DNA of 54,253 nt, counting the filler, from Hydrolagus affinis (Eukaryota), in assembly GCA_012026655.1 (NCBI GenBank). It is 3 parts of 3 records of this genome, joined end to end, with 100 filler letters (N's around TTAATTAATTAA, not from the genome) between each part and the next. Parts side by side here need not be neighbours in the genome. Positions count along the whole stretch, not along the records: positions 17,100 to 42,476 come from JAAILG010009951.1; 2 more parts are not named here. One strand, 5' to 3'. Below are positions 12,251 to 40,277 of the stretch, piece by piece. Made by a program: the position numbers and the translations under genes. How positions within the stretch are numbered: the stretch's first letter is position 1; each line of letters opens with the position of its first letter. A model generated the notes under the pieces. It was not told the DNA's origin and made no database searches. It saw only the letters and a list, made by a program, of their open reading frames with translations.

Positions 12251-12378
12251 CTCCACATCAGGCCACAGACATTTTTTATAAACCCACCAACTCCCACAGC
12301 TACCTTGACTACACCTCATCCCATAATTCAAAGTTGTTGTTTTATTTTACAATGAAGAGAAGAACCAGATGACAAAGA

Positions 12379-12600
12379 TTGAAGGAGGTGGGGAGAGAAG
12401 ATAGACTCAAAGCAAGTGTACAGAAATGCTACTTCAGTGAGCGAATAGTAAACTTATGGAACAGGCTTCAAAAGGAGATGATGAAAGCAGAAACTGTTTG
12501 TTTCAAGAAGTTAGATAGATTTTTCGCTAGAAAACACTTCATTGGGGTAAAGGGTGCAGTTAGGGACTAGTGTCAAGGGACTGCTAGATTGGTTGAAGGT
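12379..12600 (+). mobile_element. CR1-type LINE ORF2 tail fragment (similar pieces at about 15510-15700, 17630-17740, 31085-31365, 38500-38690)
   Basis: YFSERIVNLWNRL..FKKLDRF motif. Confidence 0.65.
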
Positions 12601-17099: not shown

Positions 17100-18000
17100 A
17101 ATATAAAGTAAATTTTTCAACAATTTTCTCCTTTCAAACCCACCCCCACCCTTCTCAAAAATACATTTCTGCCAGGCAAACTGTAATTCATAACTACGGA
17201 AGTAAATTAAGACAAAATAGTTTCCTTTCAATTAACTGTGCCGTAGCCTCCAGTAAGTAAGTATAATTCTATTTAATGAAAAAATTAAATTACTCTCTCC
17301 ACTTCATTGCCTTATAGTTGGTGCTCATTAAACGCTGGAATGAATTTATTTAATCCCCCCAAAAAGCCTTATTTGCCTGATTTTTTTTAATATAACAAAG
17401 GGACATTGGACTAATTGAATGTTCACTCGATTGATGTCAGGTTGATAGTCAAGCGGTTTAATGCAAAGGTATTGATATGAAATGCAGTCAACACCACCAA
17501 CATTAATAATCCCTGTTCCACAGTTTTGTTTCCTGCAGAAGTGTCATTTATCAAGCGACGTGAGGTTTCCGAGTGGGATTGAGGAACGTAAGAACCCGAA
17601 ACAACAAAAGTTCAGAAGCGTTGGGGGAACTCGGTAAGGAACGTCTTCACGCAGAGGATGGTGAGAGAGTGTGGCGCTCGTTTCCATAAGTGGGAGTTTC
17701 AAGTAGAACGCATTCAAAGTGTTCAAGAGGACATTTGACACGTCAATGTAACAACAATGACAACCCTCGCATTTGATCCCAAGCGCCTTATCACGTCTAC
17801 GGGACGGCCTCAAAGGCACTTCGCAGAATGCGAATTTGCAAAGCGAATTGACTGTACTGTATATTTTGCCAGGGAAATGAGGAAGACAAAGGGAAAAGAC
17901 AGTAGAGGGGTGTAGGAGAGGGGTGGGTGGGAGGCTTGTGTGCAGTATAAATGCCAGATTGGCTCATTTCCATGCCACTTAACGTTCTGTGTAGTTTCAG

Positions 18001-20700: not shown

Positions 20701-21492
20701 TCTATATCAAATGCATGGATTGGAGGACTCTTTAACAAATGTGGATATACTTTGGGACTGGCCTAATAGCCTTTTCTGTGTTCCTGAGACTTTAAAGGAG
20801 GATACAAAATACTTTGTGAGCGACTGGGAGTAGGGAGGGGGTGGTGGTGGGTAAGGGCACTCTTACTCAGTCTCTCCTTTTCAGCTCAGCTCTCTATTCC
20901 ATGCTTAACATGAGCAACCAAGCCGATCTGAATTAATTGCATGCATACTAATGAATCCGGCCTTGAAATTCCTTGTAAGAAAAAATGATTAAGCTGCTAA
21001 TTAAAGCTGTTTAGAACTTGTTTCTCTGTTTCTAAGCCATCAGCAAACCCTGATAATTAACATGTAAATTACCCCAGAGGTGATGGGGTAGGCGGTGGGG
21101 GGGGAAAGAGAGAGCAAAGAAGGCACAAGGGACAGATACACACCCTGCTCTCTCTCTCTCTCTCTCTCGAGTCCGTATGGTAGCTTAATTATTGCCTGAA
21201 TACCGAAACATCACAATTATGAATAGTGGCGTTTGTTTTAGCGGCAATGAGGTAATTACCCAAATGGCACTTGGAGAGAATTTTCAGGACATTTGTCTTC
21301 GCTGCCTCTGGCAACGAGGTTGAGAATGATGAAGCTGCTTGATAAGCAAACATATTTAGCAAAATGATGTTTAAACGTGACACGACTATTAATTAGCCCG
21401 TGTTTATATACACTGTACTGTATATATTACATATGCATATGTATATTTATTCAGACAGTTTGTTTATTTCCTTATGCTCATTCAGACATGAG

Positions 21493-21903: not shown

Positions 21904-23121
21904 GTAAGATATAGGCCTTCCTTCTCATGGAACTGGCTAGTGTGTAGCTGCCTGTAGCTGGCTATGGTTCCATGCCATTTGTGATACTCTAATGTACTGT
22001 GAGATCACAGTGTAGGAAGGCTAATTCTCAGTGATGGGACAATCTTAAGTCAGTGATCTCACAGAGACTGCGGTTCAATGTGGTAAAACAAGGCACTGAT
22101 TGGAGCGTCCCCAACAATGTGACCGTCACAAGAACTTGGGATCCTCTGGATCTCTCCCGTCAGTTGAGAGATCTTTGGCGGGAAACAGCATCTCCGAGAG
22201 GGACTTGTCGAGCTGGAATAAGCTGTCAACGCAATGTGCAGACCCAACCAATGCTTGGCAAGGATATTCAATTGGCTGCCGCGTTTCGCCCACAAAATAG
22301 ACAGTCAATTCTCTTTACAGTATATTCCGGTGAAGCGCTTTGAGACACAGTCTGGAAGACGTGAAAAGCGCTTTATCAAATGCAAGTATTATTATTGTTA
22401 TTCTTTGACTATTCGCGGCTGATAAGGTTAAGGATACAGAATAACAAAGTGCAGTAGACAACAGGGTGGAAAGTGCGACAATTCTGTCACGGATCCAATC
22501 TATTTATCGCATGAAATCCGTGGGGAGACGTCGCATTTTTCAACTCTAAACTGCAGTTCACACACAGTCATCTGAAAGGGCTTGGGAGAAGACTTAATAG
22601 TACACATCATTCACCCTCTTAAAGGGGCAATGGCTGACATTTCACCCACTGTATATTGTATATTCGCCCACAAATTCACAGTTAACTCACTTTACAGTAT
22701 ATTCTGTGAAGCGCTTTGGGACGTCGGTAAGATGTGAAAAGCCACTATATCAAATGCTAGAATTATTATTATTATCCAAGCAAATAAAAGTTGCGTTGCC
22801 CGAAAATCGGGGCAAAAATAACAATTATTATTTCCTGTGATGGTTTGACCCAATAATGATCCTTGCACGTCTTCTAGACTGTGTCTCAAAGCGCTTCACA
22901 GAATATACTGTAAAGCGAATTGACTGTATGTTTGTGGGCGAAACGTGGCAGCCAATTGCGCACAGCTGCGTCCCCCACAAACAATGCTGTGCAAACCTCT
23001 CGTGCCAAAAACAACACAGTAACTTTGGACCCAAACCCAACTATGCTTATTTTCAGGCCAACAGCACAAGCCGAGGAATAGTAAATTACTGGAGGTGGAA
23101 AGCAATCAGTGAAAGGTTAGA

Positions 23122-24516
23122 ATGAAACCACCAAAGTTTCCCTATCTGGGTTTTTTCTGCCTGTTCACCCGCCTAGAAAGCGTCACATTGGGGAAAACAG
23201 CCTGGAGAGCTGGTGAAGTAGCGGATACATCCGTGGGAATCCTGGCGGGGAGCAGGTTTAAGGCGGCTTGTGATTTCGGCCGGGTTAAGTCGCCTTGGGG
23301 AGTCTTTGAAATCGAATGGGAGCGTTCCTCTGGCGGAGAGGGGATGGAAAGGATCCTTCACCACTCCGTCACTCCCAACCAGGAGACAGTCCAATACCTG
23401 AGTGATTGGATCAAAGCCAGATTGCACGGTAGCTCCCTCAACTCCACCGTGTCCGTCTTGACCATTGACTCAATGGTCATCGAGGACACGGGCAAATACG
23501 TTTGCTACGTCAATGGAGTCAAACAGCGCGCGTTCAATGTCTTTGTCTGCGTCCCCTTCAGCAAGATGGTCATGGGTTTCGATCCAGAGAAGCCGGTGGA
23601 AGAGTCTCACATCCATATAACGTGTCGGGCAGGCATTGGGTTTCCCGAGCCCCTGGTCCAATGGTTCTCCGATGGGAATGACATCACCCACAAGGCCAAC
23701 ACTACCTTGGTGCGATCAATCGACCACAAGATCCTGGTGAGGACTTCCATAACGGTCAAAGCCAAGAGAGGGGTGAGGTACATGTGTAGCGTTTGGAACC
23801 AGTACATCGAAAACCTCCTGGTGGACTGGGTGGTCCCTGTGCCCGGCGTCACCGTGCGGACCCCAATCACGGATGTACTGGGGGTACGCGGGAAAAGCAT
23901 GCTGCTCATCTGCGACATCGACATCCCTGTCAACGATCCGGTCACCATCGCGGAGCTGGGCTTCTACTGGGTCATCAGGGACGTGGATTTGACCGAGCGC
24001 TTGGTCTACTCCTTCGTGAACGAGAGGCAAGACTTGGAAGAACAGGACCCGGCGTTCGCCGGCAGGGCCTCGCTTTCGTGGGAGAACTTCCTTCGCGGAT
24101 CGGTCGACCTGAGGCTGGCGAACGTGTCGATCGACGACATGGGCGACTACATCTGCCGGGTCAAGAAGGACAACGAGGTGATGGGCGAGGCCTTTCTGGA
24201 GCTTCGAGTGGCTTCGCCCTACAGCAAACCGACCATCGAATATTCTACTTACCCGGAAGTCCAGGAGCACAGTAGTGTGTCGCTCACTTGCTTGACCGAA
24301 GGCGGGTTTCCTCTGGGGAGTGTCCATTGGCGGACGAACAGTGACGAGGATCTCACCTCTCGCTCCAGGACGTCGGTCAAGCTGACGAACGGCCATTTCG
24401 ACATGTCCAGTGAGCTGACTGTTTCAGTGTCTCAAGGAGCTCGCTTCACTTGCTCCGTAGAGAACCCTTGGCTGGAGGCACGGCCTAGTTCCACTCTAGT
24501 CTTTGTTGACCAGTAA
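23122..24516 (+). CDS. B7-family (CD276/B7-H3- or VTCN1-like) protein with four Ig domains V-C-V-C in one ORF, no TM
   Basis: 464-aa ORF. V1: AAC..IEW..DTGKYVC. C1: ITCRAGIGFPEPLVQW..YMCSV. V2: QDPAFAGRASL..GSVDLRLANVSIDDMGDYIC. C2: SPYSKPTI..LTCLTEGGFPLGSVHW..FTCSVENP. The V2-C2 motifs are typical of B7-H3/B7-H4. Confidence 0.85.
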   Translation: MKPPKFPYLGFFCLFTRLESVTLGKTAWRAGEVADTSVGILAGSRFKAACDFGRVKSPWGVFEIEWERSSGGEGMERILHHSVTPNQETVQYLSDWIKARLHGSSLNSTVSVLTIDSMVIEDTGKYVCYVNGVKQRAFNVFVCVPFSKMVMGFDPEKPVEESHIHITCRAGIGFPEPLVQWFSDGNDITHKANTTLVRSIDHKILVRTSITVKAKRGVRYMCSVWNQYIENLLVDWVVPVPGVTVRTPITDVLGVRGKSMLLICDIDIPVNDPVTIAELGFYWVIRDVDLTERLVYSFVNERQDLEEQDPAFAGRASLSWENFLRGSVDLRLANVSIDDMGDYICRVKKDNEVMGEAFLELRVASPYSKPTIEYSTYPEVQEHSSVSLTCLTEGGFPLGSVHWRTNSDEDLTSRSRTSVKLTNGHFDMSSELTVSVSQGARFTCSVENPWLEARPSSTLVFVDQ

Positions 24517-25340
24517 GCGGTGGGGCTTGGGCCCTCAGCCGGTCGTTCGTGGATTCGTTCGTTCTTTCGTCCGTCCGTCGTCGAAGTATATATTCGGAAC
24601 TCTGTACAGTTTGCTATTTTTTGGATGGCTTATTCAGAAGAAAAAAATAATATATCAATACAGTATTTTGTTTCTCTCTCCTCCGAAAACAAGAGCAAGG
24701 CTTGTATCATATTTCAGCGAGCTTTTTTTTTGCATTAAAAATGAATGACGCATACAAAAAAGTTTGGGGCCATAGGATTGAAAGCAGCGTCCAAACAAGC
24801 AAAACACACGAGCAGCGTATCTATAAAAATAATATATTATTAATAATGCTCAGTACAACGCACTCGTTGCCACGCCTTGCACACCTCATTGGGGAACATG
24901 GCAAAGTGCTTCAACGGGATGCACTGTAAAGTGGAGTGACTGTATGTTTGGGGAGCGTCAGTCGGTTAGAAATTATTTAGAGTTTAACTTAATCTCGCCA
25001 AACACATTTGTTGGTGTCTCCTAGCGCGGAGGCCGTCGGTAGATTTTGATATTCGAAACCCAAACTCCGCTGAAACGGATCTTGGCTTTGCAAAGTCCCA
25101 GATAAAAAAAAAAGAGAGACGGTGACTTCATTCGGAGTTGACGCGACCGGAATCGTTTTAATTGGCAGTAAATGACAAAGGGGGTTGATTTCAGCTTTGC
25201 CTGCTCTCGTCGGTCTTTTCTTTGTGGGTTTGTGTGTGTGTTTGTGTGCCTATAGCTCTCTTTCAGCTTTCAATTGAATTGGTTGCATTAGCAAGCAAAG
25301 CGAGTGACCGGCAAAGAGAGGCTTTGGCTTCTCGAACGAA

Positions 25341-28300
25341 ATGTACGCATCAGGAATTATGGTGAGTTCATTTTTTTAATATATATATATGTATGTGTGT
25401 GTGTCTCCTTGGATTTGGTTTATAAAATATGGAGCATCAGACAAGATTAAATCTTCCTTGATGACTGACTGATTGACTGTCTCTCTCTCTCTGTCTCACA
25501 TACACACACACAAAAGAATTTGGCTCATAAGAGAAAGGGATGGATAGGATGAAGGGGAAGCCACCACTGGTGTTTCTCTGGAGCTATAGCAACAGGGGAA
25601 ACATGCAGAGCTGAAATTGACCAGAATCAACTGATTGTATTCAGGTGGCGGCCAGGAAGAAGTTGGCAAGAGTCGCTCAGGTGAGTGTTGTATGTGAGTG
25701 TGAGTGTGTTGTGTGACTGTGTGAGTGTGGGACTGTGTGACTGTGCATGTGTGTGTGTGAATAGAGCATTCTAGCTACAACAGCTTTCCCATCATGGGAT
25801 TCGGATCAGAACTTGGATTTAGGACAAATAAAAAAATGTTAACCAGAACAACAAGATCATTGTTTTTCCACCCACCACCACCCCCCACCCCCCCTTCCCA
25901 ACACACCCGTCTCTCTCGTTTAGACAAAGAGTGGGAGGGAGGGAAGGGAGGGGGGAAAAAGAGGGAAAGAGGGACAGTAGGGAGAGAGAGGAAGAGGGTG
26001 AAAGAGAGCGAGAGAAAGGTGGGAGGGACAGAAGGAGGCAGGAAGCTCTTTCACAACAAGTTAAAACATTTACAGGCAGCAGCTCTTTCTAGCTGCTGAT
26101 TTCTCTCATTATGTATGTGTGTGTGAGAGAGTGTGAGTGTGTGTGTGTGTGTAGGTGGCATCTTTACTATGAATAGAGGGGCATGAGCTTGAATTTGAAA
26201 TTCCACCCCCACCCCCCCAACACCACTTCCCTCCATCAAAAGGATACTCTTAATTAAACAGGACACAATTTGGTGAGAGTCTCAGGGAAGCAGCGGTGTG
26301 GAGGTGATCTGAGAATTGTGAGTTTCTGTTAAGTTTCTAAAATGTTTATTTTTTATTTGTTTTAAGGGGGTGCAATAATAATAATAATAATCCTTGCATT
26401 TGATATAGCGCTTTTCACGTCTTTTAGACGTCTCAAAGGGACAGACTGAAATAAACTGAATCGACTGTACATTTTGTGGGCGCATTCACGTAATCGCATG
26501 TGTGTGTGTGTGTGTGTGCACACGTCCGCAAACATATGCTCACATACATTCGTATATGTAGATGTAGCTTTATACACACACGCGCGCGCATGCTCAAATG
26601 CATGTGCAGGTTTGACACAAACATGTGCGCACACACACACACACACACCTGTACTAGTAACAGGTGCCGTTCACCCAGCACAATTGCACTCCCTGCCTCC
26701 CGGGGGGTTTCGTGAATATTTCATGTTTCATGAATAGATTGTGTTTAATTCATTGCTCGGCCAGTCTCCTCTATCCAGCCGTGCGGGTGAGCGTTACTGA
26801 GCACGGGGCCAAGTTACCTGGGAGCGTTCGGCGTCTTCGCTGTCGCCTCCACCCGCTGTCTAGTCTCTTGCTTTTCGCGTCGTCTCGTGAGTCCCGTAGC
26901 TCAGTGATTGGAGCACTCGCCTCGCAAGCGAATTGAACCTGGATTCAATTCCAGGCCAGGGCGAATCCTTGGGCAAGTTTCCTTACTCCGCATACGCGCC
27001 TAATAATAATCCCTCCAAAAAAACACACAATAATAAAATTGGTCATTTCAATGCACGACTGTTTGTGGGGGACGCTGCTGTGCGCAATTGGCCGCCGCGT
27101 TTCGCCCACAAATATATACACTCAATTCACTTTACAGTATATTCTGTGAATCGGTTTGAGACGTTGACAAGATGTAAAAAGTGCAAGGATCAAATAAGGA
27201 TTCTTATTATAATAATCCTTCCAAATCCCCCCAAAATTGGTCACTTCAATCCATGACTGTCTGTGGGGACACTGCTGTGAGTTCCACCCACCAGAGTATA
27301 CAGTGAATTCACTTTACAGTGTACTCTGTGAAGCACTTTGAAGACGTTTGCAATCAAAACAGAAGTCGCTGGGAAGGCACTGCAGGTCAGGCAGCATCTA
27401 TGGAGAGACAGAGAGAGAGGAAAATGAGTTGACATTTCAGGTTGACTCGGGACCTTTTCGACCTTTTCCCATTAGGCCCATCGATGGATCTGGTTCCCGG
27501 GGCTTGGGTGGGTCTTCAACCCAAAGTTCAACCCTATGTCTGTAGCAGTGACTGTCCCACGCTCTTGGGACGTCCTCCTGACGTGAAAGGCACTCTACAA
27601 GTGTAATTTTGGTGTTGTCGTACGTGCCTTTGTGAGGGGACTCAAACCGCTTTGCCTTGACAATTTGGACCGATGACGGTGTGCGTCTCTTCCTGCTATA
27701 CAAAGGTAGTGTTGTGGTTGTTGTTGTTGTTGTTGTCCCATCGTCGGGCGAAGAAAGGCATAGTTTTTATTGATGGAGATCAAATCTGCTCGTTTGCTTA
27801 CCCTTTCCATGTATGGCATCGCCTCCTTCGCCTTGTGGGTAGATTTGCATTGGCCTGGAGCCAGCGCCGGCGGCTGAGATGTGGAAGGAAGCCGGACTAG
27901 CCGTGCGGCTGGGCTCGGTGTCTGTATCCGGAGGATCTCCGGGTGTCCCCGGATCCTCGGCTGCCGTCGTCCAGCCAGGAACCGGGGCGAACGAGGACCG
28001 GAGGATGGCTTCGGAGACACCGCCGCCGCCAGTGAACATAGGGGTGGCAGCCGTCTTCCTCTCCGACGAGCCTCTCTCCTCCGCACTGGTAGTGGAAGCC
28101 CTGGTGAGGGACGGCCGGTACCAGGAAGCCATCGGACGCTGTGACGCCCTGTTGAACGCCCACCCCAGACACTCGCTCCACCTCCTGCTGACCCGGGCCT
28201 TGGCCTGGGTGCTGTCCGGCGGCCACGGCGGACACGGTGTGGTAGACTACCTCCTGGCCTTCGCCGACCGGCAGCAGGAAACGCTGGACTTCATCGCCAC

Positions 28301-31300
28301 CAGGCAGAGGGACTATTTGCCTCGCATCGTGGAGGCGTGCCGCGACTATCTCGCCCACCGTCACTGGGACCGGGAGGAGCCTCCCTCCGGTCACGTGCTG
28401 AGCGACTGCCAGCGCTTCCTGCGGGAAATAGCCCCCGGGGCCCGGCCCCTGCCTGAGCCCGGCAAAGCCGAGGCCCCGAGCGCCGAGGTCCTGGTGGAGC
28501 GAGCAGCGTTGCGTTACACGGCCGGCGCCGGGGAGGGCGACACCATCCTGGACCTGGCCTCGGCCTTCAACGTCTCACCAGCGCCAGCCGAGCGGAGGTT
28601 TCGGGAGCTCTTCCCGCCCGGGGACGCCGCCGCCATCTTGGATCAGGCCAAGCGCTCGGCGGAGTCGTGTTTCGCCAAGTACCGGGAGGCGGTGAGGTGC
28701 CGGGCGCAGCTACGCGGCGAGGGAGGGGCCGAGCTCCTGTCCCGGGTCTCCCTGGTGCTGGGGCTCGTCCTCCGGCTGCAGCCCGGCGAGAACCGGGACC
28801 TGCAGGTCCGGCTGGCCGACTGCGCCCTCCTGCGCGGCGACTCCGCCGGCTCCCTGGCCGCCTGCCACCGGCTGCTGGGCTCCGACCCGCAAACCTACCA
28901 CAACACCATCCTGGCCATCCGCGGATTCTGCCACCTCCGGGCACTCCGGACCCCCGAGGCCCTGGAGGACTTCCAGGCGGTGCTAGAGCACGGCTCCCCC
29001 CACCCCAGCAGCTGCGTGAAGGCTCTGTGCGGCCGGGCCGTGGCGAGAATGACGGCCGGCAGCACCTATCTCACCGCGCTGGACTACATCACCGCCTGCC
29101 GGCTCCGGCCGGATGAGACGGCCCTGGTGACCAAGTCCTACGTGCCCTGGAACCTCCGAGGTTTGCTCTACAAGGTGCTCCAGGAGGAAGGGCAGAAGAT
29201 CCTTCGAGGGAAAGCCACACAGCCACTGGCCAGCCCCCCGCACAGAGGGAAAAAGCGAGCTCAGCAAGGTTCCCAAGGCTCCTTCTTCAAAGAGGGGTAA
29301 GCTCTACACAGTGAAATAACAACAAATTGTGTTGACACAGTAGATTTGCACATCCCAAGACGCTCGCTGGACAGTTAGGGATTAAGACCCAAATTGGGGA
29401 TTGGGATCAGGTGAGTAAGGGTAGGGAGGGTGCCCAAAGGTGCGGGGGAAAAGGAGGGTCTTGAGGCTGGCCATGAAGGAGGGAAGGGAGGGAGACGAAG
29501 GGACTGTGGGATGGGGTTCCAGAGGATGGCGGAGGAGAGGCTGAAAGCCTAACCCCACATGTGGTGGACATGGCGCGGGCCACATCAACATAACACTGTA
29601 ATAATATATAAAAATCCTTGCGTTCGACAGGGCGCATTACCACATCTTCGAGACGTCTCAAAGCGCTTCACGGGATATACTGTAAAAAGTCAATTGACTG
29701 TACAATATGTGGGCCAAATGGGCTTCAACGGCCTGGTCTGTAACATTAGTTCGGGATTAAGACCCAAACTGGGAATCGGGGATAAGATGGGAAAGGGTAG
29801 GAGGGTGCCCAAAAGGTAAGGGGCGAAAAGGAAGGGTTTGAAATTGGCATGGCTTGATGGTTCTTTGGGAGTGGGGTGGGGGGGCGGTGGGGGAAACGGG
29901 CATTAAAACCTAGGACTAAAACCAGTGGTGGGGGTCTTTGCTTCCTCCAGGGACGCATTGGGGGTTCACTACTTGGCTTCGCTGCTGATGGAGTTGGATC
30001 CCTCGGACGATGAGTCTCGCATCTTGTCGGCGGACGCTCTGTACCAACTGGACCGCGTGGAGGAAGCTCACCAGGTCCTGCTGGTCTCTCTGAACGGCCC
30101 CGCGCACCGGCCTCCGGTTCTGGCTCGCCTTGCCCTGCTTCAGCTCAAGAAAGGGTTCCTCTACGATGCTAACCAGGTAGGTGTGTACTCTGCCCCCTCC
30201 CTCATCCCCCACCCCCCCACCCCCGAACAGGCCCTGTGTGTCCCAACGCAAAGAGAGTGAAGTCCGACCTAGAAGGAGAAGGTTCGAGTCTGTGGAGCTC
30301 CTGTAGCTCAATGGTTAGAGCACTCGCCTTACTCGCCTGTGTTCAAATCCAGGCAGATCGGAGCGAAATCTTGGGCAAGTTTCCTTACTCCACACACATA
30401 CACACGCGGCTAATAATAATCCATCCATCCGCAATAATAAAATTGGTCATTTCATTCCACGACTGTTTGTGGGGGGGACGCTGCTGTGTGCAATTGGCTG
30501 CCGCGTTTCGCCCACAAAATAGTCAATTCACTTTACAGTATATTCTGTGAAGCGCTTTGAGACGTCGATAAGATTGAAAAGCGCTGTATCAAATGCAAGG
30601 ATTATTATTATTCATGATTATTAATGTAACCAGACAAGATGGGGGCGGGTGAGGGAATTCTCCCGGCAGGTGAGACCTGTTTTACCGCGTTTTACCACAA
30701 GGCAGCGCTGTGACCACAGATTTCCCAAATCCGTACCTGTACCACCTGCACTCAGGTGTGTAACCACAAGGGGCCGCTCTAACCACGTAGCCGCCCAAGC
30801 TAGTGCGGCTCTCTATGTCTGCCACAGGAGGGCGATAAAACCCTAAACCAGGCAGCCACACACCAGGATTGCCTGGATACTGTAGACGCTGGATAATGAT
30901 AAGAATAATTCTTGCCTTATCATGTCCTCTAGACGTCTCGAAGCGCTTCACAGAGTATGCCGTCATGCTAATTGACTGTATATTCACGGGCGAAGCGCAC
31001 GAAACGGGCACAGCGGTGCCTCACAAACGGTCGTGGATTGAAATGACCGATTTATTGTTGGGCTTTTTTTCTGTGGAGGGATTATTGTGGAATTCTTTAG
31101 CCCCCAAAGGGCTGTTGATGCTCAGTCCTTTGAACATATTCAAGACTGAGATAGATAGATTTCTCTTTGGGACGTCCTCCAGACGTGAAAGGCGCTCTAT
31201 AAGTGCAATTTTGTTGTTATTTTGTTGTTGTTGTTCTCATTCATACAGAGATCGACGGGTATGGGGAATAAGGCAGGTAGCTGGTGTTAGAATGCAATAC

Positions 31301-34300
31301 CAGCCACGATTCAATGGCGTGTGCAGGCTCGATAGGCCGAATGGCCTACTCCTGCTCTATGTTCTTAGGTGTGTGAAGTAAGGAAACTCGCCAAGGGTTT
31401 CGCCCCCGATCGGGAATCGAACCTGGGTCTCCCTCGCTTTTCGAGGCGAGTGCTCGAAACCACTTCGACTACGGGACTCCAGGATTGGAGCGAAGTGAAG
31501 AGGGCAAAACGATTGGCTTTTTTCCTTTCAGCTGATCAAGAAAGTGATTCAGATCGGAGACACCGCCTGTCTCCTGCCCATCATGGACATCTTCAGATCG
31601 GAGGACCGTGAGCTGATGCAGATACATTGTCACTCCAACGCAACTTCAATCCTCCAGAACAAGGAAGGGGACACTTACGTCAAAGAGGCTGTGGCCTATC
31701 TCTCCCTTGCCATCATCTCTTCGGGTGAGGATCCGTCACTCAACCATAGTCTGTCTCCTGAAATAATAATAGAATAATAATATTAATAATAATCCTTGCA
31801 TTTGACGAGGCGCTTTTCACATCTTATCAACATCTCAAAAGCGCTTCACAGAATATACTGTAAAGTGAATCGACTGGATATTTTTGGGCGAAACGTGGCA
31901 GCCAATTGTGCACAGCAGCGTTCCCCCACAAACAGTCGTGGATTGAAAATTGCCGATTTTATTAGGCGTCTGTGTGTGAACGCGCATGTGTGTGGAGTAA
32001 GGAAACTTGCCCAAGGTTTCGCCCTGATCTGCCTGGATTCGAACACAGGTCTCATGCTTGTAAGGCAAGNNNNNNNNNNNNNNNNNNNNNNNNNNNNNNN
32101 NNNNNNNNNNNNNNNNNNNNNNNNNNNNNNNNNNNNNNNNNNNNNNNNNNNNNNNNNNNNNNNNNNNNNCCCCACCCACCACCCACACAGGGAGAAACTC
32201 ACTTCTGTTTCGAAACGGTGCCTTGGATCCGCTGTCTGCTCTGCTGCTCTCTTATTCTTGCTCAATGGGGTTTCACGACAGATCTCAACCAACGTGAAGG
32301 CTCCTCACAAGTGCCTCAGTTCTTCAGTCTTTGCCACCCACCCCCAATTCAAATTAATTTTGCCCCTCGCTCTCGCTCTTCCAACTTAGAGTAGATCCCT
32401 CAATCTCTCCTACCTCGTTCCTAGTCTCTCTCTCTCTCACCCTGACTCTCTCTCAAAAGGGACTCTCTCCCTTTGCCTTGCCCCTTCCTTCCCTTCTCTC
32501 AAATCCTGGCTGTGTCCACCAGGATTTGATCAGTCGCCATTACTCCCTGTCGTGCGTTGAAGAGCTTTGAGCCGTTTGTCTGATGTGGTGGCTGCTGTAC
32601 ACATTGTGTTTCAAGGCGGATGAGAGAAGGTCGGGAGAGGGGGAGAGGGAGAGAGAGAGAGAGAGGATAAACACGTATATTCTTCTGAAAGAAGAAGAGT
32701 TACATACGATCGCTTAATGCTCTATTTATCCCAACTTTGGAGCAATAAATCTCCAGGTCGGGCGTGACTGGAGCTCAGTCCATCCGTCAACTGAATGTGG
32801 CGATGGGATTGAGACCATTAATCAAGTCAAATGGGAGCCTGGTGAAGTGAAGAGGACATTAGGGAAAACGGTTCTGTTATCTGCAAGCTCGGGTGATTTT
32901 GGACTTGACTGATTTCATTGGGGCTGAAATGGGACATTTGGCTATATCTCGCTCTTTTCTCTCTCTCTCTCTCTGTGTCTCTCTGAGATGAATCTTTTGG
33001 ATAACAGGTTAAATTAACCCCTGCTGTGCCGTGCAGACAACGCCGCTCTCCCAAATCCGCCAGAAGATTGTCTTCATCGAAGCTTCGTCCTGTTGATAGC
33101 GGTCTCGCGTGTAGATCAGGAGGTGGTGGGGTCCATGCCTCCCCTCTAGGCTGATTCTCCAGTACCGTTCTAGGACATACAACGGCAACGACAACAATAC
33201 AATTGCACCAATAGAGCGCCTTTCATGTCGGGAGGACGTCCCAAAGCGCCGACAGAGGAATAGGAGTAGGCTATTCCATCCCATCAAGCCTATTCTGCCA
33301 TTCCATGAGATCTTTAATCGTGATAAGGGAAGCAATTTCGCCCATAAAATCAACCTACTTTACAGTATATTCTGCGAAGCGCTTTGAGATGTTTGAATCG
33401 TGCACAGGAAGGCACGATTATCAAACACAAGAATCATTATTATAAAATTCTTGCCAACTTTCTCCGACACTGAATCGCTCTCGCGCTCTCTCTCTCTCTC
33501 TCTCCCCGCTAGGAGGCTCTGCCTTGGATGCTCTCCTGACGAGAGCGCGATGTTATGCGCATCTCAACCAGAAGAAAACGGCCATCTTCGACTTCAGTTC
33601 CATTCTGAGGACCTGCCCAAGCCACGTACAGGCGCTCTGTGGTCGTGCGTTCACCTACGCTGTCCTTTGCAAACAGGAGGTACAGTCACCCACCCACCCA
33701 CCCACCCCCACCCACCCACCCACCCACTCACTCACAATAACAATAATAATAATCCTTGCATTTGATACATCGCTTTTCACATCTTATCGACGTCTCAAAG
33801 CACTTCACAGAATATACCGTCAAGTGAATTGACTGTATATTTTGTGGGCCAAACGCGGCAGCCGATTGCGCACAGCGGCGTCCCCCCCCACCACAAACAG
33901 CCGTGGATTGAAATGACCAATTTTATTATTGGCACATTATCATAAGTGAAACTCCTCTCTCCCAGAGTCTCTCCCTCACTCCTCCAGCAATCTTCTGAAT
34001 AAGTTCCACCCACCCTCCCCCGTCGACTCTCTGGATACACTCACACACTCTCTCTTTCTCTCGCTGCCTCTGTATTGCGTTTATGTAAGATCAAATTAAA
34101 AGCACTAAAAGCCTACCTCGTTTCCACTCCAGGGCTGCTGCTATTTACCAGGCAAGGCACTGAAATTTGAAACAAACAAGGTTACTGACGAGGCTTAAAA
34201 ACTAACAGCCCTTTTGTGTAGGGTTTTAAAGGAGGGACTATGCATGGTTTGAGCACTTGACTTCGGGGACTGAGTGTAAATGCTTCCAAAACCCCTTCAT

Positions 34301-36765: not shown

Positions 36766-39700
36766 CTGATAATAATACCTCCACATAAAAAAAATTGTTC
36801 ATTTCAACCCACGGCTGTTTGTGGGGGGACGCTGCTGTGCGCAATTGGCTGCCATGTTTCGCCCACAAATATACAGTCAATTTGCTTTACAGTACATTCT
36901 GTGAAGCGCTTTGAGATAGAGTCTAGAAGACGTGAAAAAGCGCTATATCCAATGCAAGGATGATTATTATTATTATTATAGGAACTCTGTTCCCTAACCC
37001 TCTCTGTAGATCTCTGTGCCATCATTCGACCATCTCCCGAACCGAGGTTGCTCGTTCTATCATTCATTCAGTAGAACCTGTCACCCTTTACTGTAAAGTG
37101 ACTGTGTATTTTGCGGGGGGGGCGGGGGGAATGCGGCGCGAATCTGCACACAGCAACGTCTCCACAAACAGCGGGGAAGTGAGTGACCAATTTTCTGTCC
37201 TCGGGATTGTCGGCAGGACACTTAAGAGAGAACAGGACCAAGGGATCTTTACCAAATGTGCATAAACACATTTGCACATTTGCACATTTGCAAGGATTAT
37301 TATAAACGAGTGTATTGGGTAGCGCGGGCGGGGGGAAAACTTCCGTTTAAAGACGCAATTTCCCTCCCCTTGCATTTGTTCTGTGTGTGTGTGTGTGTGT
37401 GTGTGTGTAGGCCTCAGCAGTTCATACTCAAAGTGCCACCATTCAGTATTTGGTTTCCCCCCCACCCTCTCTTTTTTCTCTCTCTCTCTCTCTGCATTAA
37501 AAGCGCCAGCTAATTAGTATAATGGACTGCTGTTTATTGAAGTGATTGATTTAAAAGTGGAGCTGGAGATGCGGTATGCGCTTTTTCAGCGAGAGAATTA
37601 ATGAGCAAAGTGACTATCCATAAGTGGTGCATTAAAGGCTCTCCCAACAATTTCTGAGTTTGCTCTCTCTCTCTCTCTCTCTCTGTCTCTCTGCACCTCC
37701 TCTCAGTCAACAACTAGAAGTGTCTGACTTTTGGTGACTTGTTCTGAAGAGTTTTGACGTGTTTATGGAGCTCCTTTCACGTCGGGAGGACGTCCCAAGG
37801 CGCTGAACAGTCCCGGACGGGACCCGAGCAAGGGAGAGGGGCAGGGTGGTGGGTGGGGTGGGGGAGTTCTAGTTGTCTCAAAGTGCTTCACAGAACATAC
37901 TGTAAAGTAAATTGACTGTATGTTTGTGGGCGAAACGCGGCAGCCAATTGCGCAATTGCGCAGCGTCCCCCACAAACAGCCGTGGATTGAAATGAACCAA
38001 TTTTTTATTATGGGTTGTTTTTGGACGGATTATATTATTAGGTGCGTGGAGTAAAGAAACTTGCCCAATTAGAATAGAGAAGCGAGTTTCTCTCCCGCTG
38101 TGTCAGCCCGCCAACCCTTCAGGAGAAAATGATCGATCTCTTCTTCAACAACAAAATGACGCTTTCACGTAGCGCATTTCACATCAGGAGAACGTCCCAA
38201 GCGCTCTGAGACGCCGTCCGGCGTGGAGGGCGCTATATAAATCAAAGTTGTTGTTGTTGTCCCAAGACCCGAGCTGGGGTCAGACTCGAGTAGTTGAGAT
38301 CGCGGGCCTGGTGGATGTCAGTCTTAGCCTTGCGTTTTCTATCACATTCCTGGCAATAAAACTCATGGCTGGAAAGTATAGGAACTGGGTCCTTGTTATC
38401 CTTATTTGGTTTGAAGCTCTCACCTCTCCGTAGTGACTCCCAGACTAACTGTAATTCAGAACATCTGACTCTCCCGAGTGTCTTTAACCCTGCGTTAATC
38501 AACAAGCAGAACAGGCATAGGATGAGGCCATTCAGCCCATCAAGTAAGTTCCACTACATTAGACCTTGGCAGATCTTTCATTCCAATGCCATACCTCTTC
38601 TGCTGAAGTCTCTGTAAGCTTCCTCATTAATTCTACTTCAAACAGTTTCCTATGTCAGAGCGTTCCACATCTTCACAGCCCTGCGCTAGAGGGAGTGAGT
38701 TCCACAGGTGAGGGGGAAGGAGGAACTGAGCTTTGGGTCCTGGATTGGGAAAGGCGGATGTTGCCGGGCAAACGGAGAGGCCATGGGTGGAACGTGTAAA
38801 TTGCACCAAAGTGCTGATCAAATGTGTGGGATTGACATGGAGCCAGAGGGTAAATACTGTCACTGGAAGCTTTCCAGGAAGTTCTGGGAGCTTGGCCAAA
38901 CACATCTTCTTGAAGCCTAGAATATCTAATGGGGTTTCCAAATTAGCCTGATTGACTCTCAATTGCTGAAACTTTTACTGGGGCCCATTTTTGGGGGAAA
39001 AAGCCCAGAGCCCTACTTTCTTCCTCAGCGTCCTTTTTGTGGACGTGTTTTTTAGTCTGTTCCTCTTTAGCAGGATCTTAGCTTGAGCAGCCTCCTGGCC
39101 CCATTATGTCACGTTGACCAGACCTGATACTCATTACTTAACTCCTGGTGCTTTTTTTAACATCAACTTGCACTTGTATAGAGCCCTTCACGCAAGATGC
39201 CAAGCATCACGCGAGGGCATAATGTCAAGATGGGGGGAGGGAGGAGGTGAGTGTCAGCACGGTCAAAGAGGGAGGTCCTCAGTCGCGATCAAAAAGAGGA
39301 CGAAGGAGGAGGCAAGATGGAGGGAGGGAAGAAATTTCTCAAGCTACGAGAGATGGGGCACTGGCTGAAAGGGCGGATGTGTTGGCAGTGGAGCAGGGGG
39401 TGCGAGGGACAAGCAGGAGGCCAGACTAATGTGAACTTAATAATTATAATAATAATCCTTGCATTATACATTTGTGGGTGAAACACAGCAGCCAATTGCG
39501 CAAGGCAGCGCCCCCCCCCACACAAACAGTCGTGGATTGAAAACGACCAATTTTGATTGGTGTGTATTTTTGTGGACGGATTATTATTTGTGTGTGTGGG
39601 TGTGTGCGCGCGTATGTGTGTGTGTGTGCGTGTGGGTGTGTGGGTGTGTGTGGAGTAAGGAAACTTGCCCGAGGTTTCGCCCTAAACCTGCCCGGATTCG

Positions 39701-40277
39701 AACGCGCAGCTCTCTGGCGCTTGTTAAGGGACCGCGCGCTCTAACTGGGTTCTTTTGGTTCGGGCAGGCGGCATCCCAGGAGGCGAAGGCCTTGGCCAGA
39801 GAGAGTCGCCAGGAGAAGGCTCTGCGTTGTCACACGGTGGCTGTGCTGGCCAGCGACTGTGCCGGGCATGTGCGGGCGCGGGCCGCGTGCCTGGCCAGGC
39901 TGAGGCAGTACGAGAGAGCGGTGGGCGACCTGAGCCGACTCATCGACCGGCGCGGCTCCCCCGAGCCGGTGGCGGACTACTGCGCCAGGGGCCACGTCAG
40001 GCTGCTGGCCCTCAGGGACCTCGAGGCTTGCCAGGACTACGCGGAGGCCCTGAGGCTCGACCAGCCGGCCGCCCTGGCCCTCATCGCCCGCAGGCCCGGT
40101 CGGTCCGCGCTGTCCCAGCGTTTCCACCGCGTGGCTCTCGGCCGCTTCGAGCGAGGGCTCTACCAGGAGGCCTGGAGACTGGTGGACAGTGGGATGGTGG
40201 TGGACGAGGCCAACGTTGAGCTCAGGAGACTGAAAGCCAGGATCAAGAGGGAGGATTCCAGCTGCGTGGTTCACTAG
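25341..40277 (+). CDS. TTC34: Tetratricopeptide repeat protein 34, about 1029 aa, 9 coding exons
   Basis: Exons 25341-25361, 25645-25680, 27843-29296, 29951-30176, 31532-31724, 33513-33679, 35610-35877, 36351-36565, 39768-40277; all GT-AG, phases consistent, 3090 nt. Motifs LTRALAWVLSG, ALDYITACRLRP, YVPWNLRGLL, LARLALLQLKKGFLYDANQ and LKARIKRE match TTC34 as recalled. The first two exons are less certain. Confidence 0.9.
26889..27340 (+). mobile_element. SINE plus partial tandem copy
   Basis: Family consensus. Confidence 0.75.
30292..30612 (+). mobile_element. tRNA-headed SINE
   Basis: Family consensus. Confidence 0.8.
31785..32069 (-). mobile_element. tRNA-headed SINE running into an N gap
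   Basis: Family consensus. Confidence 0.8.
35245..36977. mobile_element. Three SINEs around TTC34 exons 7-8 (about 35245-35500 minus, 35922-36278 plus, 36588-36977 plus)
   Basis: Family consensus; further copies at about 33750-33930, 37780-38070, 39440-39745, 44760-45100, 45235-45370, 46720-47040, 49870-50090 and 51905-52195. Confidence 0.75.

Follow-up and report, generated by a model that had tools for sequence, protein, structure and literature searches.

We describe an intact open reading frame (ORF) at 23122..24516 on the plus strand of a 54,253-nucleotide stretch of DNA from the chimaera Hydrolagus affinis (GenBank assembly GCA_012026655.1); the whole stretch is referred to here as the window, and its positions 17,100 to 42,476 come from record JAAILG010009951.1. 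The frame opens with ATG, encodes 464 residues and ends in SSTLVFVDQ followed by TAA, as seen both in the ORF listing and in the sequence itself. We propose, with a probability of about 80%, that it represents a working B7/butyrophilin-family gene of ancient conservation, paralogous to CD276 (B7-H3), in which one coding exon specifies an anchorless and presumably soluble product with four immunoglobulin (Ig) domains in the order V-C-V-C.

Domain layout, orthologs and selective constraint

The complete coding sequence (CDS) of this anchorless B7-H3-like protein, delimited by the ORF list and by alignment with its orthologs, comprises 464 codons plus TAA, and all the domains given below lie on the same plus strand. 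Residues 1-35 (23122..23226) begin with the signal-peptide-like MKPPK, continue with a hydrophobic core, FPYLGFFCLF, and end in a fast-evolving spacer. The divergent half of the protein follows, opening with IgV-like domain 1 (residues 36-144; 23227..23553), which was delimited by the strands of an AF2 model and holds Cys50-Cys128 and the N107 sequon. IgC domain 1 (residues 149-237; 23566..23832) was assigned from AF2 strands and a Pfam C-type Ig match and holds Cys168-Cys222. The half most like CD276 opens with IgV domain 2 (residues 244-365; 23851..24216), supported by a Pfam V-set match at 251-363 and by the alignment to CD276, with Cys264-Cys345. It closes with IgC domain 2 (residues 371-460; 24232..24501), recognised as C-type Ig by Pfam (Ig_3, C2-set_3 and C1-set, 369-453) and by AF2, with Cys390-Cys444. 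The stop codon TAA (24514..24516) stands four residues past the last strand, in agreement with the ortholog alignments. Pfam matches to Ig domains in the first half are weaker. The AF2 model, built on an alignment of 24 sequences, has a mean pLDDT of 85 and shows four beta-sandwich domains, residues 1-34 being disordered; it supersedes an earlier, poor model from seven sequences (pLDDT 61). The unbroken V-C-V-C frame ending in TLVFVDQ, from which a preliminary description of this DNA had started, is thus borne out by both Pfam and AF2.

All four canonical cysteine pairs are present in the window protein, and the eight domain cysteines are conserved across the orthologs. The three N-glycan sequons previously listed, NST, NTT and NVS, are found at residues 107, 193 and 334, respectively, and the one at N107 is kept in chimaeras, sharks, rays, Acipenser and the coelacanth; Polyodon is without it (KSS). 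A ninth cysteine, C143 at the V1/C1 junction, is invariant in the cartilaginous fishes only, being D or T in sturgeons and the coelacanth, and it may form an intermolecular disulfide in cartilaginous fishes, giving a linked dimer or binding a partner. The C1-V2 linker that ends IgC domain 1, WN.YIENLLVDWV.P.PG, occupies invariant columns 225-241 and is a signature of the family. Two long ORFs overlap the CDS in other frames, at 23716-24396 on the minus strand (226 aa) and at 23793-24275 on the plus strand (160 aa), and most likely arise from the GC richness of the coding sequence (GC3 0.72).

Full-length relatives were retrieved by a word-based protein search from Callorhinchus, Pristiophorus, Scyliorhinus, Chiloscyllium, Narcine and Rhinoraja, with four sharks and two rays in all besides Callorhinchus. 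An exhaustive profile search over 1.84 billion protein representatives, in which names were looked up afterwards, further yielded Polyodon, Acipenser and Huso ('CD276 antigen-like', 463 aa) and Latimeria (LOC102356954, 474 aa). Identity to the window protein is 78% in Callorhinchus (elephant shark), 43-50% in sharks and rays, and 34-35% in paddlefish/sturgeon and coelacanth. As the frame is intact in at least ten species separated by more than 400 million years (My), its length goes well past what chance would give. Nor is the gene a recent retrocopy or confined to the Chondrichthyes, as Acipenseriformes and the coelacanth have it too, and therefore its single-coding-exon state is at least as old as the crown jawed vertebrates. 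Among the annotated proteins covered by the profile search, none from a teleost, holostean, bichir, lungfish or tetrapod reached the score of a member, and word-based searches that used V2-C2 by itself or the protein of the paddlefish brought in no further members. The exact protein of the window is absent from the protein collection searched.

Several candidates were set aside in the course of these searches. Long 'hemicentin-1-like' proteins of teleosts and lungfish (P0010, P0013, P0023) are not orthologs, as their scores sum many Ig units, they carry transmembrane segments and they fall in a BTN-like clade. A viral origin was rejected, no relatives being found in viral contigs. A Logan contig of the sturgeon group (L004), considered as a transcript, follows the paddlefish genome collinearly, down to a microsatellite on its 5' side, and is probably genomic. 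The database names of the orthologs are currently 'CD276 antigen-like', 'butyrophilin-like protein 2' or 'uncharacterized', and no paper describing the anchorless gene was found in the open-access literature, searched by database identifiers and for shark B7-H3. Within the B7 family the gene forms an ancient branch, hitherto undescribed, that lacks an anchor and has only one coding exon.

Compared with the DNA contig of a relative diverged by ~2.4%, the ORF shows at least 34 differences, at least 15 of them synonymous and at least 19 non-synonymous; pN/pS is 0.38 among the differences listed, none of which creates a stop, and the frame stays intact. The Narcine-Rhinoraja pair gives an omega of 0.36 overall and of 0.30-0.43 for the individual Ig domains (n=4), the lowest value, 0.30, being that of IgV domain 2, and between the chimaera and the rays dS is saturated, with dN at ~0.45-0.49. 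These ratios, 0.36-0.38 and not the value near 1 that the preliminary description had held to speak against a working gene, argue that the gene is under purifying selection. The same data bear on whether the ORF could be a non-functional or unexpressed retrocopy preserved by chance, an idea that its intronless CDS, the near absence of RNA reads in the available runs and the SINE-like repeats abutting the gene on both sides would favor. Yet the frame is intact in chimaeras, sharks, rays, chondrosteans and the coelacanth, omega is low as given above, and the cysteines, a sequon and the positions of start and stop are conserved. Such a chance survival is extremely improbable, and we regard it as effectively refuted by conservation.

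Relation to CD276 and other B7 genes

Membership in the B7 family, as initially suggested, is supported by sequence as well as by fold. A phmmer search against PDB places CD276 (B7-H3) first, with an E value of 1.4e-43, followed by BTNL8, BTN1A1, PD-L1, BTN3A and ICOSL. Each V-C unit of human 4Ig B7-H3 can be aligned with residues 239-460, with ~30% identity over V2-C2, and the first V-C half alone again has CD276 as its best match, though a weak one (E 2e-13). Searching with the pLDDT 85 model, Foldseek places human 4Ig B7-H3 (9ly6_A) first, over 441 columns and with an E value of 2.2e-28, and two-domain matches to PD-L1, 2Ig B7-H3 and butyrophilins reach TM-scores of 0.8-0.85. The protein has the IgV-then-IgC order with intradomain disulfides that characterises B7/butyrophilin members, and its closest relatives in sequence and fold are B7 members; the type I membrane anchor and the rule of one Ig domain per exon are family traits that it lacks.

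A maximum-likelihood tree was built from 56 V-C units. The first halves group together in it with a support of 100/100, as do the second halves with 100/98, and each half-clade is divided into chimaeras, sharks and rays, and chondrosteans and coelacanth, mirroring the species tree. As both half-clades follow the species in this way, the tree indicates that the V-C-V-C layout, with halves that already differed, predates the split between cartilaginous and bony fishes. The two halves of the window protein are 31% identical over 124 aa, and this value and the separate half-clades agree with the earlier claim that the halves are divergent and do not stem from a recent exon duplication. The tree joins the two halves as sisters with weak support (63/44), as an internal duplication in the stem could have left them; the V2C2 units join a CD276/BTN polytomy, and a sister relationship of V2C2 and CD276 is not rejected (p-AU 0.43).

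Canonical CD276, including the shark sequences, forms a clade of its own (90/80) with the four-Ig anchorless family outside it, and Scyliorhinus torazame carries both the anchorless gene (P0003) and a canonical CD276 homolog (P0144). As sharks also keep a canonical, multi-exon and membrane-anchored CD276, the anchorless four-Ig gene is a paralog of CD276 and not its ortholog. Human 4Ig B7-H3 (CD276; PDB 9ly5/9ly6; 2Ig form 4i0k/9lme) shares the B7-type V-C-V-C layout with the anchorless gene, and yet canonical CD276 is a type I membrane protein encoded by several exons, whereas the anchorless gene has a single coding exon and no transmembrane segment. Mammalian 4Ig B7-H3 arose by tandem exon duplication and its halves are ~96% identical, the B7-H3 of fish, amphibians and birds being V-C (PMC3172298). 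Unlike this recent duplicate, the anchorless gene has halves of 31% identity in an arrangement older than the bony fishes. Similarly, soluble B7-H3 arises through metalloprotease shedding (PMC3172298), whereas the anchorless gene encodes no anchor itself. Its predicted end product is the same as that of sB7-H3 and sPD-L1, which are produced by shedding or alternative splicing, that is, a B7 ectodomain in soluble form with the capacity to engage a receptor or to block it; however, these two are minor products of genes for membrane proteins, whereas in the anchorless gene a soluble form would be the sole product, and would have been so for more than 400 My.

The IgV-IgC-IgV-IgC ectodomain is also that of BTNL2, the name that the NCBI pipeline gave to several of the orthologs. 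BTNL2, however, is membrane-anchored and multi-exon, and the units named 'BTNL2' in mammals and teleosts group in a distinct BTN clade (99/91), apart from the anchorless family. The name as applied to the orthologs is a coincidence of domain architecture.

The 3' end, the coding exon and the surrounding locus

The absence of a membrane anchor, claimed from the window alone, extends to the orthologs. The last 30 residues of the window protein contain no hydrophobic segment, the best 12-mer having a Kyte-Doolittle value of 0.72, and those of ten orthologs contain no hydrophobic stretch (best 12-mer <1), whereas the transmembrane segment of CD276 from shark, bird, snake and dog, taken as controls, stands at 2.6-3.0. 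All ten orthologs end within ~1-2 residues of one alignment column, with C-termini such as FVDQ, FISE, FINE, FIGD, FVDD, FVNKNR and FIVW, and the stop lies in different contexts: CAG TAA GCG in the window, GAT TAA TGG in Narcine and GAT TAA GTC in Rhinoraja.

It is conceivable that the ORF is the ectodomain exon of a membrane protein, which a donor at CA/GTAAGC (24513/24514; the slash marks the junction) would join to a transmembrane/cytoplasmic exon, so that the stop would be used only in an intron-retaining isoform. The stop of the window does overlap GTAAG, a motif that resembles a donor well, one frame at 25182-25250 reads as a hydrophobic stretch, and soluble isoforms produced by read-through are common among Ig-superfamily genes. 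However, the motif CA/GTAAGC is not kept in the rays, being absent in Narcine and shifted in Rhinoraja, and therefore the conserved stop is no by-product of a splice site. A donor at the stop would moreover be of phase 2, whereas Ig-domain exons are usually of phase 1, and the position of the stop has been conserved across more than 400 My. A tblastx comparison of 24517-27878 with the 10 kb downstream of the gene in three species returned nothing meaningful, neither a transmembrane exon nor any other conserved coding segment 3' of the ORF, and the hydrophobic reading at 25182 sits in TG-microsatellite/repeat DNA. The sequence following the stop can be aligned between Narcine and Rhinoraja for several hundred nucleotides and includes ATTAAA, as expected for a 3' untranslated region (3'UTR), and the few RNA reads available cross the stop unspliced. 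We consider the membrane-protein explanation very unlikely.

A putative 3'UTR at 24517..24760 (+), with the poly(A) signal ATTAAA at 24734-24739, is weakly indicated by a motif scan, by similarity to the rays and by a few RNA reads; the similarity of the 3' flank of the window to the 3'UTR of the rays is patchy (tgtacaGtttgCtatt). The few RNA reads on the gene all lie within 24404-24737, where they run through the stop, reach the ATTAAA and fade after it, and they are compatible with a rare unspliced 3' end but prove nothing. The part of the 3' flank that was read shows no poly(A) tract, and neither such a tract nor target-site duplications, the other mark of a processed retrogene, would be expected to last for more than 400 My.

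In all five of the other species compared, the span of the CDS equals its length, the uninterrupted CDS being 1374 nt/457 aa in Chiloscyllium, 1455/484 in Narcine, 1392/463 in Rhinoraja, 1470/489 in Scyliorhinus and 1392/463 in Polyodon. Multi-exon relatives of this intronless CDS exist in the canonical shark CD276 genes, which span 6,993 nt in Cetorhinus (325 aa) and 52,901 nt in Scyliorhinus (299 aa). As canonical shark CD276 thus occupies 7-53 kb and encodes a transmembrane segment, multi-domain single exons are not the norm for shark B7-H3, and the one-exon CDS is an ancient trait specific to the anchorless gene; such a norm in chondrichthyans would, according to the preliminary description, have spoken against its reading. 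The claim of a single exon therefore stands for the whole CDS in six species including the window, but not for the entire gene, as an acceptor-like motif suggests an intron in the 5' untranslated region (5'UTR).

The candidate acceptor of this 5'UTR intron (gcttattttcAG) lies at 23045..23056 (+), where a polypyrimidine-CAG/G motif located 66 nt 5' of the ATG is aligned with its counterparts in Narcine (cactaacaaccacgtttaattgCAG/G) and Rhinoraja (cactaacaatcgtgtttatttaCAG/G). A branch-point-like CTAAC accompanies the motif, and in the two rays branch point and acceptor are of textbook form. The alignment suggests that a 5'UTR intron is present and that the gene is probably not completely intronless, and since the motif is conserved, 'single coding exon' is a safer wording than 'intronless'. 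A putative 5' leader within the coding exon (23057..23121, +), conserved with the rays at the nucleotide level, contains an in-frame TGA at 23110-23112, four codons 5' of the ATG. Several shark and ray models (P0002, P0003, P0005; L001 10001-10069) start at an upstream ATG and have ~25-30 extra residues before MR(L/P)L. We rejected this N-terminal extension (MVEKWEV...) as coding, as in-frame stops in the window and in Rhinoraja close it, and hence take the leader to be non-coding; the stretch, although similar between species, looks like a conserved 5' leader, possibly with an upstream ORF, and not like protein.

Upstream of the gene, a conserved non-coding element occupies 20905-21076 and 21185-21272 (also 4015-4323 of L001 and 12304-12413, minus strand, of L003). 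Its identity is 81% (176 nt) and 85% (89 nt) to the electric ray and 74% (129 nt) to the paddlefish, the B7-like ORF being at ~67%. The element has no ORF, no Rfam match and many TAATTA-type homeobox motifs, and it lies 1-6 kb from the B7-like gene in all three species, inverted and downstream in the paddlefish. It is probably a developmental enhancer, and it supports the synteny of the locus. As the first exon of the gene the element (20905-21272) was rejected, its candidate donor GAG/GTAATT being CAG/ATTATT in Narcine. SINE-like repeats flank the gene at ~22567-22990, 26241-26574 and 26909-27400 and have enormous DNA and RNA read depth; their inverted copies yield false 'joints' in the reads, and one copy ends ~70-90 nt 5' of the candidate 5'UTR acceptor.

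Downstream and on the same strand lies a TPR-repeat gene (27879-29300, 29925-30260 and 39459-40277, +), the first coding exon of which encodes ~470 aa, with a GC content of 0.71 at 28100-29099. The preliminary description had labeled this neighbor TTC34, of which only similarity at the level of TPR repeats was confirmed. A run of N at ~31930-32040, in the intron region of this gene, is an assembly gap or a masked stretch. A range of 10 kb around the ortholog in Narcine, Rhinoraja and Polyodon did not show the TPR gene, and in Polyodon the upstream neighbor is a mitofusin gene. The observed/expected CpG ratio is 0.6-0.85 throughout 17100-42476, non-coding flanks included, versus 0.16-0.43 at the same locus in two ray genomes (L001, L002), which suggests that CpG depletion is much weaker in this genome or region. 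We considered whether the gene body is a CpG island; the ORF is at 0.85 but its flanks are at 0.6-0.8, and hence the ratio reflects the genome, not the gene. An Rfam scan gave no matches.

Predicted product and its significance

Based on our data we propose that splicing probably joins a non-coding 5' exon at a point 66 nt 5' of the ATG and that translation would yield an N-terminal signal sequence and four disulfide-bonded Ig domains (V-C-V-C), the protein ending right past the last strand with no transmembrane segment or glycosylphosphatidylinositol (GPI) signal. As it would have neither, the product should be released as a soluble, N-glycosylated protein. On immune cells it may then, in soluble form, serve a B7-H3-type receptor as ligand or compete for it as a decoy, a role that we put forward with modest confidence. 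The N-terminus of the window protein reaches a Kyte-Doolittle value of 1.8 over a 10-mer, and its start methionine aligns with one common to sharks and rays; the signal cores of the bony fish orthologs are strong (2.8-3.1). Since the N-terminus is signal-like, the N107 sequon is present in most orthologs and the cysteines are of the disulfide-forming kind, we infer with fair confidence that the protein enters the secretory pathway and is released.

Several points weigh against this proposal. The signal core of the cartilaginous fishes is modest and rich in aromatic residues (Kyte-Doolittle 1.5-2.5), and the ortholog gene models are automatic predictions, which could share the end of the ORF for the same reason. 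RNA depth over the ORF is essentially zero in three poly(A) single-cell runs, the organism of which is possibly not the species of the window. The list of differences from the closely related contig is possibly incomplete and its indel positions are unplaced. In addition, we know of no agreed receptor for canonical B7-H3 itself.

Alternatively, the gene may encode a real secreted four-Ig protein with a non-immune role, in adhesion, matrix, reproduction or neural development, its likeness to B7 reflecting ancestry only. The anchorless gene stands outside the canonical CD276 clade, and it adjoins a non-coding element that is rich in homeobox motifs and deeply conserved in chimaera, ray and paddlefish, as is typical of developmental neighborhoods. 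On the other hand, the proteins closest to it in sequence, fold and tree, namely CD276, PD-L1 and butyrophilins, are without exception immune ligands, and we judge an omega of 0.36-0.38 to be closer to that of immune-type Ig-superfamily genes than to that of tightly constrained developmental genes. The loss in some lineages and retention in basal ones also resembles the pattern of the orphan CD28-family receptors (PMC11599192). We find a non-immune role unlikely and favor that of a B7-type immune ligand.

B7-family ligands are central immune checkpoints, and B7-H3 is a major cancer target. The gene shows that a separate B7-H3-like gene for an anchorless, presumably soluble, four-domain product existed already in early jawed vertebrates, and in lineages that evolve slowly selection has maintained it for more than 400 My, while it was not found among the annotated proteins of teleosts or tetrapods. 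CD28-family orphan receptors were retained in basal jawed vertebrates and lost elsewhere (PMC11599192), and the anchorless gene would add an example from the ligand side to the 'diversify, then lose members' history described for that receptor family (PMC11599192). It also provides a concrete protein for receptor fishing in sharks or sturgeons. A bolder thought, which we hold only tentatively and consider doubtful, is that the gene represents a founding B7 branch, a constitutively soluble V-C-V-C checkpoint ligand of the first jawed vertebrates that was lost independently in teleosts and tetrapods together with its receptor. If this were true, the pattern of presence and absence, with the gene in cartilaginous fishes, chondrosteans and the coelacanth, could locate that receptor among the orphan immune receptors that are similarly retained, and might possibly offer a lead to the receptor of B7-H3. 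The gene is of moderate interest to comparative immunology, and would be of more if it leads to a receptor.

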